Part shown: positions 5,573 through 32,846 of the stretch, piece after piece
Position numbering within the stretch: position 1 is the stretch's first letter
How the letters are laid out: each line of letters begins with the position of its first letter
Origin: Anaeramoeba ignava BMAN
Lineage: Eukaryota; Protista; Anaeramoebae
NCBI GenBank assembly: GCA_028826165.1
Contig: JAPDFW010000073.1
Location: 248,001 to 312,000 of the forward strand
Direction: 5' to 3'
Length of the DNA: 64,000 nt
Program-made: the position numbers and the translations under genes
Notes under the pieces: generated by a model
Told to the model about the DNA's origin: nothing
Seen by the model: the letters and a program-made list of their open reading frames with translations, nothing else
Database searches by the model: none

Positions 5573-6723
5573 TCAAAAATCACAAAGAATCTTTTCATTT
5601 TGAAAAATTTGAAAATCCCTAACAACTTCATATTGAGTAATAAAAACCCAAAGTTCATTATTGGTTATTGAATTTAAATCTTGTCCACCAAATAAAATAA
5701 ATTTAGTAGGTGAAATTTTAACACAAGAAGCTCCAAATCTTTTTGAAGGTTGATTTGAATTTGTTAATTTTTTCCATTTCTTATTGTGAATATCCAAAAC
5801 CCAAAAATCTGAAGTATAACCTGATTTATCAGAAAACCCAGAAAAAACAAAGAAAAAATCTTCATAAATAAAACAACTTGAACCACTAAGAGGATCTGGA
5901 GCAATATTTTGTTCAGATAAATCTAATTTTGACCAAGAATTAGAGAATAAATCAAAAAAATAAACAGCATTTTCTCTTTGACGCAAAGAAATTCTTCCTC
6001 CAAATAAGATAATCTTATCATTATAAATTTCCATAAAATGTGAACTTCTTGGTTGAATAAAAACTCCTTTTCGTTCGAATTCTTTCCATTTTTTAGTATT
6101 TGTGTCAAATTCCCATAAATCATTTAATCTATTATTAAAAAAATTTATTCCTCCAAAAATATAAATTTTTCCTTTATAATAGACACTTGAATGTGAAAAA
6201 CGACCTTCAGGTTTTTTTGATTCAATTTTTTGATTTAATTCTTTTGATTCATTTTTTTGATTTAGTTTTTTTGATTTTGTTCTTTTGATTTTGTTGTTCT
6301 TTGATTTTGTTTTTTTGATTTTGTTTTTGATTTAGTTTTTGATTCAATTTCTTGATTTAATTCTTTGGATTCAATTTTCTTCCATTTTGATTTAATTGCA
6401 TTAAATTTATAAATTTCATTATCAAATTCAGAAAGTGATTCAAAAGTTCGACCTCCCCAAATCCAAAAAGTATCTTTAAATCCACAAAATGTATGAGCAC
6501 TTCTTTTAAATGGTTTTTTTCCTTTTGTTTTTTCTTTTTTCCATTCTTGAGTTGTTAATGAAAATGAATATAAATCATCAAATTGATCATCGTTTTCAAC
6601 TTGTTTTCCTCCAAAAAAATAGATTTTGTTTTGTGTAAATGAATAAGCAAGTTGTGTTTTGTTAACTGGTTGAGGCCAGAATTTATGTTTTTGTTCAAGT
6701 TTTTTCCAACCAACAAATTGCAT
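5573..6723 (-). CDS. Kelch-repeat protein, frameshifted near 6270-6330; ends at what looks like the start of a BTB domain
   Basis: ORFs 6262-6723 and 5573-6034 carry kelch motifs (YFFGG, WIWGG, ILFGG, RSAHT). The second frame extends upstream through EGRFSHSSVYYKGKIYIFGG. The frame changes inside a degenerate ESKELNQ repeat. Confidence 0.8.
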
Positions 6724-6789
6724 TTATAAAAAATAAAAGAAAAAAAATGAAATATTTTTTTTCATTTTTTCATTTTTTCTTTTTCGAAA

Positions 6790-8564
6790 ATGAATGAAAT
6801 TTTATTTTTTGGTGACAATCAATATTCAAAACTTTTCAAAAATAAACCAAATAAAATAATAAAACCAATTCAATTTAAATTTGAAAATGAAAATGAAAAT
6901 GAAAATGAAAAACAAATTAAACAAATTTCAACAGGTTATTTTTCAACAATTTTCCTTTTTGAAAATGGAAAAGCAATAGAATATTTAAATGAAAATATTC
7001 AAATCAAAATCCTGAAAAAATCCAAATTGAAAATATTCAAAAAGTAACTGTTGGTTTTCAAAATGAAGCTATTTTAACAAAAGAAGGAAATGTATTTGCA
7101 AAAGGAGAAGATATCAATCCAAATAATCCAAAAGAATTTATCAATATTTCATCATTAATTGAAGATCTAGATGATATAATAATTAAAGATGTTGTTTCTG
7201 GAATATTTTCAATTTATTTATTAACTTCAAATCAAAATGTTTATGGAATTGGTGATAATTCTTATGGTCAACTTGGTTTAGATTCTGAAACACTTAAAAA
7301 AACAGAAAAACCAATTTTAATGATGAAAAATGTTTCTAAAATATTTTCAGGAAACTTTTCACATAGAGTTTTTCTTTTAAATTCAAATCAAGAATTATTT
7401 GTATGTGGTTTAAATAGATTTGGCCAACTTGGATTAGGAGAATCAAGTAAAGAAGAAACAGAAATCCAAAAATTAACCAAAATCCAAAATATTCCAAAAG
7501 GTAAAATAATTGATATTCAATGTGGAAATTATCATTCAATAATGTTGATTGAAAATGAAGATGAAAATGAAAATCCAAAAAGAAAACTTTATTCATGTGG
7601 AGATTATCTATATAATGGACTTGGAAAAGATGAAGATACTTATGAATTTACTGAAATCAAATTATCTTTATTTGAAAATGATAATAATATTCTTGATTTT
7701 TCTTGTGGATGTGATCATACTTTGGTTTTAACTTCCAAAGGGAAATTAATAGTATTTGGGAATAATCAACAAGGTGAATTAGGAACTGGAGATACAAAAA
7801 ATAAATTTATCCCAATTCAAATTGAACTTCCTGAATTAAGATTTAATGAATATATTTCTAATTATCATGTTCATTGTGGATATCAAAAATCATTTCTTTA
7901 TTATTCTCCTCCTTCTTTTTCCAATCTTGAAGAAGATTTGATAAAACTATTTAGAAGAAAAGAATTTTGTAATATTTCATTTAAAACCAAAAATGGAGAA
8001 ATAACCAAAGCTCATAAATTAATATTGAAATATAGATTAAATCAAAATCAAAATGAAATTGAAAAACTTAAAGAAATCATTTCAAAAAAATCAATTAAAG
8101 AATCAAATCAAATATTTGAAATGATTTATTCAAATAGAATAATAAATCCAATATTATATTTTGAAATTAAAGAAATTATAAATTTAAATGAAAAAATTGA
8201 AGAAACAATGAAAAGAATTTATTTAAATGAAAATGAAAATGGAAAAGATTTTATAATTGAAAGAAAAGAAAAACAATATAAATTTCCTAAATTAATATTA
8301 ATAATGAGAAGTGAATTATATCGAGGAATGTTTTTATCTGTTACTGAAGATACTTCTAATAAAGTTACAGATTATAGTGAATTAAATAATAAATCATTTC
8401 AAATATTTGAATATTGGATTTATTCAAATCAAATTAAAGATGAAATTAAAATTACACAAGAAATAATTGATGAAATTAAAATTGGAATTGATTATTTTCA
8501 ATTAAATCAAACAAATCCAAATTTATTTGATTTATTAATTAATAAATTTAATAATCAAAATTAA
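6790..8564 (+). CDS. RCC1-repeat plus tandem BTB protein, copy 1; 1-nt frameshift near 6995 (pseudogene or consensus error)
   Basis: ORFs 6790-7047 and 7320-8564 are collinear with the intact paralogs. GAAAATATTCAAATC here versus GAAAAAGATTTAAATC in copy 6. Confidence 0.85.
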
Positions 8565-8655
8565 AATTAAAATTAAAATTAAAATTAAAATTAAAATTAA
8601 AATTAAAATTAAAATCAAAATTTAAAATTTAAAATTAAAATTAAAATTAAAATCC
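8560..8655. repeat. (AAAATT)n spacer between RCC1 copies 1 and 2
   Basis: Directly visible hexamer run. Confidence 0.9.
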
Positions 8656-8687
8656 AAAAATTTTTTTTCATTTTTTTCTTTTCAAAA

Positions 8688-10442
8688 ATGAATGAAATTT
8701 TATTTTTTGGTCAAAATGAAAAACCAATTCTTTTCAAAAATGAACCAGAAACAATAGCAAAACCAATTCAATTTAAATTCGAAAATGAAAATGAAAATGA
8801 AAATGAAAAACAAATTAAACAAATTTCAACAGGTTATTTATCAACAATTTTCCTTTTTAAAAATGGAAAAGCAATAGAATATTTAAATGAAAATCCTTCA
8901 AAAATCCAAATTGAAGAAAATATTCAAAAAGTAACTGTTGGTGAAGAAAATGAAGCTATTTTAACAATAGAAGGAAATGTATTTGCCAAAGGAGAAGATA
9001 TCAATCCAAATAATACAAATGAATTTATCAATGTTTCATCATTAATTGAAGATACAAATGATAGAATAATTCAAGATATTGTTTGTGGAGCTTATTCAAT
9101 TTACTTATTAACTTCAAATCAAAATGCTTATGGAATTGGTTTAAATAATTTTGGTCAACTTGGTTTTGATTCTAAAAAACTTAAAAAAACAGAAAAACCA
9201 ATTTTAATGATGAAAAATGTTTCTAAAATATTTTCAGGAAATACTTCAAGACATGTTTTTCTTTTAAATTCAAATCAAGAATTATTTGGATGCGGATATA
9301 ATCAATATAGTCAAATTGGATTAGGAGAATCAAGAAAAGAAGAAAAAGGAATTCAAAAATTAACCAAAATACAAAATATTCCAAAAAGCAAAATAGTTGA
9401 TATTCAATGTGGAGGTTGGCATTCAATAATGTTGATTGAAAATGAAGAAGAAAATCCAAAAAGAAAACTTTATTCATGCGGATTTTATCTATCTAATGGA
9501 CTTGGCAAAAATAAAGATACTTATGAATTTACTGAAATCAAATCATCTTTATTTGAAAATGATAATATTCTTGATTTTTCTTGTGGTGATTCTCATAGTT
9601 TGATTTTAACTTCCAATTCAAATTTAATTGGATTTGGAGATAATGAATATAATCAATTAGGAACTGGAGATACAAAATATCAATCAATTCCAATTCAAAT
9701 TGAACTTCCTGAATTAAGATTTAATGAATATATTTCCAATTATCATGTTCTTTGTGGTGATTATAAATCATTCCTTTATTATTCTCCTCCTTCTTTTTCC
9801 AATCTTGAAGAAGATTTGATAAAACTACTTAGAAGAAAAGAATTTTGTGATATTTCATTTAAAACCAAAAATGGAGAAATAATTGAAGCTCATAAATTAA
9901 TATTAAAATATAGATTAAATCAAAATGAAATTGAAATTGAAAAACTTAAAGAAATTATTTCAAAAAAATCAATTAAAGAATCAAATCAAATATTTGAAAT
10001 GATTTATTCAAACAGAATAATAAATCCAATATTATATTATGAAATTAAAGAAATTATAAATTTAAATGAAAAAATTGAAGAAACAATGAAAAGAATTTAT
10101 TTAAATGAAAATGAAAATGAAAAAGATTTTATAATTGAAAGAAAAGAAAAGCAATATAAATTTCCAAAATTAATATTAATAATGAGAAGTGAATTATATC
10201 GAGGAATGTTTTTATCTGTAACTGAAGATAAATCTAATAAAGTTACAGATTATAGTGAATTAAGTAATAAATCATTTCAAATATTTGAATATTGGATTTA
10301 TTCAAATCAAATCAAAGAAGAAATTCAAATTACACAAGAAATAATTGATGAAATTGAAAGAGGAATTGATTATTTTCAATTAAATCAAACATATCCAAAT
10401 TTATTTGATTTATTAATTAAGAAATTTAAAAATCAAAATTAA
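8688..10442 (+). CDS. RCC1-repeat plus tandem BTB protein, copy 2
   Basis: 584 aa; RCC1 motifs (GxNxxGQLG, CGxxHS) and BTB motifs (FCDISF, AHKLIL, RSELYRGMF). Confidence 0.9.
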   Translation: MNEILFFGQNEKPILFKNEPETIAKPIQFKFENENENENEKQIKQISTGYLSTIFLFKNGKAIEYLNENPSKIQIEENIQKVTVGEENEAILTIEGNVFAKGEDINPNNTNEFINVSSLIEDTNDRIIQDIVCGAYSIYLLTSNQNAYGIGLNNFGQLGFDSKKLKKTEKPILMMKNVSKIFSGNTSRHVFLLNSNQELFGCGYNQYSQIGLGESRKEEKGIQKLTKIQNIPKSKIVDIQCGGWHSIMLIENEEENPKRKLYSCGFYLSNGLGKNKDTYEFTEIKSSLFENDNILDFSCGDSHSLILTSNSNLIGFGDNEYNQLGTGDTKYQSIPIQIELPELRFNEYISNYHVLCGDYKSFLYYSPPSFSNLEEDLIKLLRRKEFCDISFKTKNGEIIEAHKLILKYRLNQNEIEIEKLKEIISKKSIKESNQIFEMIYSNRIINPILYYEIKEIINLNEKIEETMKRIYLNENENEKDFIIERKEKQYKFPKLILIMRSELYRGMFLSVTEDKSNKVTDYSELSNKSFQIFEYWIYSNQIKEEIQITQEIIDEIERGIDYFQLNQTYPNLFDLLIKKFKNQN

Positions 10443-10820
10443 AATTAAAATTAAAATTTAAAATCAAAATTAAAAATTAAAATCAAAATTAAAATCAAAA
10501 TTAAAATTAAAATTAAAATTAAAAATTAAAATTAAAGTTAAAATTAAAATTAATCAAAATAAAATTAAAATTAAAATTAAAATTAAAATTAAAATTAAAA
10601 ATTAAAATTAAAATAAATTAAAATCAAAATTCCAAAAATTAAAATTAAAATTAAAAATCAAAATTAAAATTAAAATTAAAATCAAAATCAAAATTAAAAT
10701 TAAAATTAAAATTAAAAATAAAATTAAAATCAAAATCAAAATTAAAATTAAAATCAAAATTAAAATTAAAATTAAAATTTAAATTAAAATTAAAAATTAA
10801 AATTAAAATTAAAATTAAAA
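10440..10820. repeat. (AAAATT)n spacer between RCC1 copies 2 and 3
   Basis: Directly visible hexamer run. Confidence 0.9.
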
Positions 10821-10856
10821 ATCCAAAAAATTTTTTTCATTTTTTTCTTTTCAAAA

Positions 10857-11975
10857 ATGAATGAAATTTTATTTTTTGGTCAAAATGAAAAACCAATTCT
10901 TTTCAAAAATGAACCAAATGAAATAACAAAACCAATTCAATTTAAATTCGAAAATGAAAATGAAAAACAAATTAAACAAATTTCAACAGGTTACTTTGGA
11001 ATAATTTTCCTTTTTAAAAATGGAAAAGCAATAGAATATTTATATGATGAAGATTCAAACCAAAATCCTCAAAAAATCCAAATTGAAAATATTCAAAAAG
11101 TAACTGTTGGTTATCTCAATGAAGCTATTTTAACAAAAGAAGGAAATGTATTTGCCAAAGGAGATGATATTAGTTCAAAAAATCCAAATGAATTTATCAA
11201 TATTTCATCATTAATTGAAGATACAAATGATAGAATAATTGAAGATGTTATTTCTGGTGCTTATTCAGTTTACTTATTAACTTCAAATCATAATGTTTAT
11301 GGAATTGGTTCAAATCTTTGTGGTCAACTTGGTTTTGATTCTGAAATACTTAAAGAAACAGAAAAACCAATTTTAATGATGAAAAATGTTTCTAAAATAT
11401 TTCCAGGAAATTCTTCTTATCATGTTTTTCTTTTAAATTCAAATCAAGAATTATTTGGATGCGGTGCTAATAGATTTACTCAAGTTGGATTAGGTGAATC
11501 AATAAAAGAAGATTGGAAAATTCAAAAATTAACCAAAATCCAAAATATTCCAAAAGGTAAAATAATTGATATTAAATGTGGATTTTATCATTCAATAATG
11601 TTGATTGAAAATGAAGATGAAAATCAAAATCCAAAAAGAAAACTTTATTCATGTGGTTATAATAAGGATAATGGACTTGGTAAAGATGATACCTATGAAT
11701 TTACTGAAATCAAATCATCCTTATTTGAAAATGATGATATTCTTGAAATTTTTGTTGGACAAGAACATACTTTGATTTTAACTTCTAAATCGAAATTAAT
11801 CGGATTTGGAGATAATGATTATGGTCAATTAGGAACTGGAGATACAGAAAGGCAATTAATTCCAATTCAAATTGAACTTCCTAAATTAAGATTTAATGAA
11901 GATATTTCTAATTATCATGTTTCTTGTGGATTTAACAAATCATTTCTTTATTATTCAAATCAAAATCAAAATTAA
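10857..11975 (+). CDS. RCC1-repeat protein, copy 3 (no BTB)
   Basis: 372 aa; ends FLYYSNQNQN* right after the propeller. Confidence 0.88.
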   Translation: MNEILFFGQNEKPILFKNEPNEITKPIQFKFENENEKQIKQISTGYFGIIFLFKNGKAIEYLYDEDSNQNPQKIQIENIQKVTVGYLNEAILTKEGNVFAKGDDISSKNPNEFINISSLIEDTNDRIIEDVISGAYSVYLLTSNHNVYGIGSNLCGQLGFDSEILKETEKPILMMKNVSKIFPGNSSYHVFLLNSNQELFGCGANRFTQVGLGESIKEDWKIQKLTKIQNIPKGKIIDIKCGFYHSIMLIENEDENQNPKRKLYSCGYNKDNGLGKDDTYEFTEIKSSLFENDDILEIFVGQEHTLILTSKSKLIGFGDNDYGQLGTGDTERQLIPIQIELPKLRFNEDISNYHVSCGFNKSFLYYSNQNQN

Positions 11976-31076: not shown

Positions 31077-32734
31077 ATGTTATTGGCAATTAAAAATAAA
31101 GATATTGATTCTTTAAAAAAATATACTACAAAACAAAATCTCTTTCTTCCAGTAATTAAATCATTAAGAAAAAATAATAATTTTCAAAAAAATTAATTTT
31201 TGTTTTATAAATAGAATGTAAATTATTAAATAAATAATTTATTTCAATAAAAATTAATTTCAAAAAATTAAACAGAATAATTCACCACTTCATGTTGCAA
31301 TTTCATCTAAATCTGGAATACAGATTTTAAGTTATTTACTTAGTTTAGGATATAATATTAATGAAACTAATGTATTTTTGTTATTAATTTTGTTATTTTA
31401 TATTTTGAATTAAATATTTTTTTATTCACAATAAAAAGGAAGTAAAAATGAAATTAAAATTTATTCAAAATAAAAAGGAAGTAAAAATTAAAATTAAAAT
31501 TTATTTTAAAATTTAAATTTACTTTAAAATTAAAATTTATTTTAAAATTTAAATTTATTTGAAAATTAAAATTTATTTGAAAATTGAAATTAGTATTAAA
31601 AATTATTTGAAAAAAAAGTTTTTAAAATTTTATTTTTTCCAATTTGAAAATTAAAAATTTCCTTTTTAGAAAAATATGTAAATATACATTTTTTATGCTT
31701 GTATTCCTTTTTTTTTTACATTATGCTTGTATTTTTGATGATGTTGATGCAATTTCATTTCTTTTAAAAAATGGAGCAAATCCAACTTGTGTTAATGTAT
31801 ATATTTTTTAAAATTAAATTTAAATTTAACAATAAAAATAAATATAAATATAAATATAAATAGATGGTAAAAATATAAGATGAACTTCCAAAAAAATTGT
31901 TTCAAAACTAATTTAACCAATTCTTTTTGAAAATATTTATTTTTAGTTTGTAAGTATTTTAGAAAATATAATAAAGAAATAAATTTGAAAAAATAATTAT
32001 AATAATTATAATAATAATTATAGGGACAAACAGCAAATGATTTAACATATGGAAGAAATACAAATGAAATTATTCTAAGTTTTATGAGTGTAGTTGATGA
32101 TATTTCAAAATTATTTACAAATCAAGAATTAACTGATTTAGAAATTAAAACAGCAAGTGAAAGTGTTTTTGCACATTCATTGATAGTAAAATTAAGATTA
32201 GAAATAGATGATTTAACAACATTATTAATCATATTGAAAAGTTATTTGGCAAACGAAGTGAAAATATTTATGAAATGGGTTTATGGAGAAACACCAAATG
32301 AAGAAGAAACAGAGAAAATATGTTCAATATTAGAAAAAATAGGGATAAATAAAGAAAAATTCAATGAAAAGACAGGAAGAAATGGATTATTAAAGGATTT
32401 AATAAGATTATTTCAAATTGAAGAATCAAAAGATTTCAAAATTATATCAGAAGGAATTGAAATTAATATTCACAAAGTGATTTTACTTGCCAGAAGTGAA
32501 TTATATCGAGGAATGTTTTTGAGTGTTAATGACAAATCAAACAAAGTATCTGATTATAGTCGCAAAAAGCCTGAAACTGTTCAAGCTTTGGTTAATTTTT
32601 TATATACTGAAAATTTGGATCCAAATTTACCAAAAGATATTTTGGAAGAATTGCATGATGCTCATGATTATTATCAACTTTCTCCTCATTCTTCTCTTCC
32701 TTTTCTTCTTGATTCTCTTCTTGATTCAAATTGA
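31077..32734 (+). CDS. Ankyrin-repeat plus tandem BTB protein with 3-nt microexons
   Basis: Exons 31077-31151, 31276-31371 (NNSPLHVA...GYNINETN), about 31716-31796 (LHYAC...GANPTCVN; acceptor unclear) and 32024-32734 (GQTA... HKVILLARSELYRGMF). Candidate microexons 31215-31217, 31439-31441, 31864-31866 and 31947-31949. Confidence 0.85.
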
Positions 32735-32846
32735 ATCTTTCTTTCTTTTTTTCTTTTCTTTTTTTTCCTTTTTTTTCATTTCCATTTTGATTTTTAAATT
32801 TTAATAAAAAAATTTTTCTTTTTATTTTTCTTTTTCTTTTTCTTTT

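Follow-up and report, generated by a model that had tools for sequence, protein, structure and literature searches.

The window, i.e. the whole 64,000-nt stretch of DNA that was analysed, is extremely rich in A+T and contains gene M0811_08521 of the anaerobic amoeba Anaeramoeba ignava, which combines ankyrin repeats with a BTB domain and occupies positions 31077-32735 on the plus strand. Exon 1 (31077-31151, 75 nt) encodes MLLAIKNK...NLFLP, corresponds to residues 1-25 of the public protein P0001 (NCBI M0811_08521, 338 aa) and is followed by the donor gtaatt. Intron 1 contains a candidate 3-nt exon, AAT (N), at 31215-31217 (aaatag-AAT-gtaaat, exon in capitals), leaving sub-introns of 63 and 58 nt; this layout agrees with that of the paralog family, and the public model lacks the AAT. 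Exon 2 (31276-31371) encodes ankyrin sequence, reads NNSPLHVAISSKSGIQILSYLLSLGYNINETN and is 96 nt long, which is the modal exon length of the ankyrin-BTB family (70 of 102 exons). Between exons 2 and 3 another candidate 3-nt exon, GAA (E), can be found at 31439-31441 (aaaaag-GAA-gtaaaa). It is part of a tandem duplication (31421-31505, period 39, 2.2 copies, 93% matches) that has created a second GAA triplet at 31478-31480. As the two copies are only 36 nt apart, their joint use in one transcript is improbable.

Exon 3 (31670-31796) contributes the ankyrin part LHYAC...PTCVN (31716-31796), its tail being ...LHYACIFDDVDAISFLLKNGANPTCVN, and ends with ...tgt gtt aat at 31796, directly followed by gtatat. 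Exon 4 (32024-32735, 712 nt) encodes the capping half-repeat GQTANDL..., a linker and the BTB domain and terminates with a TGA stop codon; its product is identical (100%) to residues 103-338 of P0001. The domain assignments are supported by Pfam, i.e. residues 76-102 of P0001 match Ank (PF00023) with 38.4 bits (cut-off 21.1) over profile positions 6-32 of 33, and residues 132-220, encoded by exon 4, match BTB (PF00651) with 52.1 bits (cut-off 20.5). From this architecture and from what is generally known of BTB proteins we infer that the product may act as a cullin-type (Cullin-3) substrate adaptor, although no data on cullin or substrate binding are available.

Exons 3 and 4 are separated by 227 nt (31797-32023) that contain merely 15 G and that the public model removes as one piece, fusing ...PTCVN directly to GQTAND without M and F. 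This stretch can, however, be read as three introns that enclose two exons of a single codon each. Sub-intron a (31797-31863, 67 nt, gtatat...aaatag) precedes ATG (31864-31866, tag-ATG-gtaaaa), whose Met would be the first loop residue and occupy Pfam Ank position 33. Sub-intron b (31867-31946, 80 nt, gtaaaa...tttttag) precedes TTT (31947-31949, tttttag-TTT-gtaagt), whose Phe would be the second loop residue, i.e. position 1 of the capping repeat. Sub-intron c (31950-32023, 74 nt, gtaagt...attatag) then leads to the acceptor at 32022-32023 in front of GGACAAACAGCA (GQTA). Thus, both triplets meet what is demanded of a 3-nt microexon, namely canonical AG and GT borders and introns of viable length (67, 80 and 74 nt). 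As LHYAC...CVN covers Ank positions 6-32, the direct join of the public model omits positions 33 and 1.

An earlier note, based on the sequence alone, had proposed exactly this subdivision into GT-AG introns of 67, 80 and 74 nt, and in this respect it is fully confirmed. Its statement that M and F restore an ankyrin period of 33 aa also holds at this site, as 33 residues lie between the L at position 6 and the N of GQTA-N, but it fails as a family rule, since most repeats comprise 34 residues, resulting from a 96-nt exon plus two codons. It had further predicted that gene predictors miss such exons, which is correct for the public model of M0811_08521.

We regard ATG and TTT as probably genuine single-codon exons of the ankyrin-BTB gene, their inclusion in its own mRNA being inferred. 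This assessment rests on the paralogs of the gene. The A. ignava genome contains at least 152 matches to the last exon at E <= 0.001, out of 2,142 first-look candidates, and in the protein library it is matched by 795 cluster representatives. In all, 60 paralog loci were retrieved; the comparisons below rest on 38 paralogs that have an intron at the repeat-BTB junction and on 21 intronless ones. The earlier note had suggested a scan of ankyrin genes for AG-NNN-GT, and we carried it out for the family on 75 kb upstream of the 38 intron-bearing paralogs, using the antisense strand and dinucleotide shuffles as nulls. AG-N3-GTAA occurs 187 times in sense orientation, compared with 6 antisense sites and 7.2 +/- 3.1 in the shuffles. 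Spacings of 0-2 and of 4-12 nt hardly rise above background, if at all (no more than 17 sense sites vs 6-8 in the shuffles), and spacing 0, i.e. AG directly abutting GT, is even depleted in these paralogs (1 observed vs 12 expected). Stop codons are absent from the 187 triplets, although 19.7 would be expected (P ~1e-9); they mainly encode N, K, D, S, F and Y, but also E.

The number of triplets per repeat border corresponds to the number of residues found in genes that have no introns. In the 21 intronless paralogs, where repeat units were located by a profile of the 96-nt exon, the next 32-aa unit starts exactly 2 aa on in 102 cases, and in the intron-bearing paralogs exactly two triplets lie between successive repeat exons in 47 of 67 cases, the median length of the sub-introns being 70 nt. 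At the junction between the last repeat and the BTB exon two triplets are present in 19 of 28 loci, and in 8 of these 19 the second residue is F or Y. The splice sites are strong, as the acceptor is TAG in 77-79% of cases beside microexons vs 53% at large exons, and the donor is GTAA in 81-83% vs 53%. Hence the triplets keep the frame, contain no stop codons and have a conserved position among homologs, i.e. they behave as coding microexons should. The sequence signals of the microexons, their conservation across the family and the coding constraint acting on them are thereby shown.

For two paralogs, inclusion in mRNA can be followed directly. The A. ignava entries of EukProt EP01156 have TransDecoder-style headers ('ORF type:complete'), and, based on these headers and on general knowledge of the resource, we take them to be ORFs from a de novo transcriptome. 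EukProt P0153 (374 aa) equals NCBI P0011 (366 aa) plus the dipeptides QE, KV, YM and MF, each of them located at a repeat border. At the corresponding locus a chain of 13 exons, all bordered by canonical AG/GT sites and separated by introns of 58-127 nt, yields P0153 residue for residue. Eight of these exons measure 3 nt and come as four pairs of neighbours, the last of which, ATG followed by TTT, stands in front of GKTPRDSA, i.e. codons and position are the same as in the window gene. Similarly, EukProt P0151 (616 aa) equals NCBI P0087 plus K-S between ...GDLNYRD and LKRPIDY, and the underlying genomic gap of 241 nt contains tttag-AAA-gtaatt and then attag-AGT-gtaaaa. All 10 microexons predicted for P0153 and P0151 are thus present and none is skipped. 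Provided that the EukProt entries are what we take them to be, inclusion of 3-nt exons in mRNA is shown for these two paralogs, and the proposal of the earlier note that loop residues are encoded one amino acid per 3-nt exon is supported by the family statistics, the intronless paralogs and both transcript ORFs, inclusion in the mRNA of the window gene itself remaining an inference. A single-sequence structure model of residues 1-175 of P0153 (mean pLDDT 68.8, below 50 around the loops) places the residues in question between the helix pairs of successive repeats.

P0011 and P0087 are the only ones among 30 paralog models looked up for which a transcript-derived partner exists. In the protein collection, a query with exon 4 of the window gene matched only the public model, which forms a one-member cluster, and the first 100 aa of exon 4 gave no transcript-derived protein or fragment; a search for sequencing runs returned a single one, of unspecified kind. 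P0011, P0153, P0087 and P0151 are also among the proteins with the least A+T-biased amino-acid composition of the 150 listed family members, which fits higher expression or stronger constraint.

The omission of single-codon exons is not restricted to M0811_08521. The public family proteins (P0004-P0150) are bimodal, showing gaps of 0 residues between repeat units in 106 cases and gaps of 2 residues in 147. All 0-gap proteins that could be placed, at 20 or more loci, come from intron-bearing genes whose large exons have been joined directly, and the 2-gap proteins stem from intronless genes; therefore, the annotation error is systematic. Genome-wide, TAG-N3-GTAAA occurs 2,597 times vs 645 times for N2 and 361 times for N4, these two spacings having been substituted for a reversed-pattern control that exceeded the hit count and was thus no useful null. 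As 47% of the family's microexons conform to this strict motif, scaling gives a rough estimate of ~4,000 or more sites in the genome.

Some triplets occur outside the usual arrangement. At one locus (G000:C1:409000-413400, minus strand) runs of at least 10 TAG-NNN-GTAAA sites, 68-79 nt apart and without a large exon between them, sit in a 73-75-nt tandem repeat (21-37 copies, 83-87% matches), and similar triplet runs are found at C1:942330-942793 and C1:1058077-1058594. The runs at the first locus could be arrays of consecutive single-codon exons or, alternatively, a minisatellite born from a unit of one 3-nt exon and one intron. It is conceivable that such units can multiply by tandem duplication, similar to the doubled GAA in the window gene.

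As for the origin of the layout, the sole homolog examined from Anaeramoeba flamelloides, P0037 (JANTQA010000032.1, gene 6001-11253), has its loop codons within ordinary exons, its introns being located elsewhere and one of them being ~3.7 kb long. The layout is therefore not universal in the genus, of which another species, A. pumila, has hardly any introns (10.64898/2026.04.11.717937). Amino-acid composition failed to separate A. flamelloides from A. ignava proteins. The paper describing the A. ignava genome gives the A+T content as 80.65% overall and as 91.86% for introns and describes RNA-seq data mapped with Hisat2, and its main text mentions neither microexons nor ankyrin or BTB proteins; RNA-seq data of A. 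ignava BMAN were used in PMC11550330.

The 5' end of exon 3 deserves a separate comment. Positions 31670-31774 lack any AG, which leaves the AG at 31668-31669 as the sole canonical acceptor of this exon, and from 31670 on the exon carries an aberrant, non-ankyrin, hydrophobic stretch, KICKYTFFMLVFLFF, where x-G-x-T-P is expected. The public model includes KICKYTFFMLVFLFF as well and needs an odd donor at 31380. When all AG...GT pairs in 31372-31800 were listed, no canonical acceptor or small exon restored an x-G-x-T-P start of the third repeat. Region 31670-31730 contains two near-copies of acatt...atgcttgtatt, ~30 nt apart and in different frames. Thus, a near-duplication of local sequence may have damaged the 5' end of exon 3, or an assembly error may be present at 31670-31730; either is possible.

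How two acceptors and two donors that lie so close to each other are handled can only be inferred. Introns of about 70 nt fall into the size range where introns rather than exons are recognised. Each microexon is framed by a TAG acceptor and a GTAAA or GTAAGT donor, both close to consensus, and in our model the three introns of ~70 nt are most likely recognised intron by intron. A donor site spans the last three bases of the exon, which here are the entire microexon, abutting the upstream acceptor. Since a U1-type donor site would overlap the whole 3-nt exon, neighbouring introns could hardly be engaged together and sequential removal, one by one, is probable; both the order and the mode of splicing remain inferences. 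The two codons would supply the residues that link the last full repeat (...GANPTCVN) to the capping half-repeat (GQTANDL...). The layout of one 93-99-nt repeat exon followed by two 3-nt exons is inherited and recurs at most repeat borders in hundreds of paralogs, where it probably spread via duplication of repeats and genes, and the automatic public annotation leaves the single-codon exons out.

Several other explanations have to be weighed against this model. Short splice-like motifs arise randomly in an A+T-rich intron, and when the interior of the gap 31797-32023 is shuffled a mean of 0.13 AG-NNN-GT[AT] sites remains, so that one or more such sites are expected with P = 0.12. Two or more, as present here, have P = 0.007, and the strand- and spacing-specific excess over the paralogs, which is 26-fold, together with the complete lack of stop triplets leaves virtually no room for chance. 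Alternatively, the public model might be right, i.e. the 227 nt might be a single intron whose inner AG-NNN-GT sites are unused and serve as decoys or as intermediates resembling recursive splicing. In favour of this reading NCBI M0811_08521 links VN to GQ directly, but the public models P0011 and P0087, which are of the same kind, are contradicted by transcript ORFs, the triplets avoid stop codons, and true recursive sites consist of AG and GT without a spacer, the very arrangement that is depleted in the family. We thus consider a single intron very unlikely.

Regulated skipping is a further option, in which cassette exons of a single codon would vary the length or identity of the loop and thereby diversify the binding surface. 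The exons are symmetric and in phase 0, so that the frame survives skipping, and they fall in inter-repeat loops, positions of which are randomised in designed ankyrin binders. The earlier note had raised this idea as a speculation. However, we find no evidence for it, as both transcript ORFs hold every one of the predicted microexons, the protein clusters of P0153 and P0151 contain no shorter RNA-derived isoform, intronless paralogs have two fixed residues at the loop, and the splice sites exceed the average in strength, which is what constitutive exons would show. Hence skipping is unlikely, and the same is true for a bolder version, according to which single-codon exons, in pairs or perhaps in longer runs, are routinely spliced by the thousand in A. 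ignava, the units of one 3-nt exon and one ~70-nt intron having spread by tandem duplication, and the amoeba varies the target-binding loops of ankyrin-BTB receptors by frame-neutral inclusion or skipping; if true, it would amount to splicing-based diversification of a very large ankyrin-BTB receptor family. Finally, the triplets may be, or may have been, real microexons in a copy that is decaying or silent, which would reduce them to remnants without a role in a functional protein. The lack of an AG in 31670-31774, KICKYTFFMLVFLFF in place of x-G-x-T-P, the Pfam Ank match limited to positions 6-32 and the tandem duplications inside the gene point in this direction. No transcript-derived protein was found for the window gene, as compared with two of the 30 paralogs checked that have one, and in a family of hundreds of members dead copies are to be expected. 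On the other hand, exon 4 is an intact frame of 236 codons despite a genome of ~81% A+T, every splice signal of the ATG and TTT microexons is intact, and that the gene is missing from a single transcriptome says little about whether it is silent. Decay thus remains a possibility for this copy.

We prefer the reading of ATG and TTT as genuine single-codon exons, and several implications follow from it. So far, 3-nt exons have been known as rare, isolated curiosities, whereas in A. ignava they form a standard element that occurs twice per ankyrin repeat, and there are probably several thousand of them in the 43-Mb genome. The public proteins of a very large family are systematically wrong, the affected repeats being devoid of their loop residues, which distorts domain, structure and phylogeny work on the public protein set. 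As to splicing, the spliceosome has to cope, repeatedly within one pre-mRNA, with an acceptor and a donor only three bases apart, so that A. ignava lends itself to studies of the smallest possible exon and of ordered splicing under intron definition. In evolutionary terms, one has to ask by what route, and for what reason, introns came to flank individual codons where a repeat protein has its binding loops. In the literature searched we found no mention of microexons in Anaeramoeba or in ankyrin arrays and no description of a family-wide array of paired single-codon exons at the loops of repeat proteins. What is new, and shown in two paralogs, is RNA-level evidence that paralog single-codon exons are spliced into mRNA.

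Compared with known systems, the arrangement resembles recursive splicing in that acceptor and donor stand almost back to back within an apparently single intron, but it differs from it in that three bases are kept in the mRNA, spacing 3 is the one enriched 26-fold, and the introns are short. The sites do not qualify as recursive splice sites, for three bases separate AG and GT and the triplets of paralogs appear in transcript ORFs. There is also a likeness to the micro-exon genes of Schistosoma, an expanded gene family that likewise carries series of tiny exons which are symmetric and preserve the frame. Most of the coding sequence of these genes lies in exons of 6-36 nt, they are alternatively spliced and their products are secreted. 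In A. ignava, by contrast, microexons account for only 6 of the ~102 nt of a repeat, there was no sign of alternative splicing, and large exons (75-712 nt) carry nearly all of the coding sequence, so that the gene is not a micro-exon gene of the Schistosoma type.

With respect to the ankyrin consensus and designed ankyrin repeat proteins, the A. ignava residues correspond to Ank positions 33 and 1 in the inter-repeat loop. In the C-terminal capping repeat of the designed proteins G-K-T-A-F-D is preceded by an aromatic residue, much as F precedes GQTAND here. To our knowledge, no other ankyrin genes encode these loop residues outside ordinary exons.

Microexons of 3 nt are described in animals, e.g. 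in cytohesin-1 (PMC6314551), in MAP4K5 (PMC8632122) and in a Drosophila survey (PMC8042270). The A. ignava exons are like them in being exactly 3 nt long and in adding one residue in frame. The animal examples, however, are single and often regulated cassette exons in exon-defined genes with long introns, whereas those of A. ignava are consecutive, apparently constitutive and flanked by introns of ~70 nt. A parallel may also be drawn to plants, where coding microexons of 1-15 nt are pervasively misannotated and where, in rice, two adjacent microexons (5 nt + 12 nt) have been validated (PMC8831610). Both systems have in common tiny coding exons between canonical introns that are absent from annotations and conserved in position, and in both some homologs are intronless, the microexon being absorbed in a larger exon (PMC8831610). 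Yet plant microexons are isolated and form ~45 conserved clusters of single genes, whereas in A. ignava almost all repeat borders of a huge family carry pairs of 3-nt exons, amounting to eight microexons in one protein of 374 aa and to an estimated few thousand per genome.
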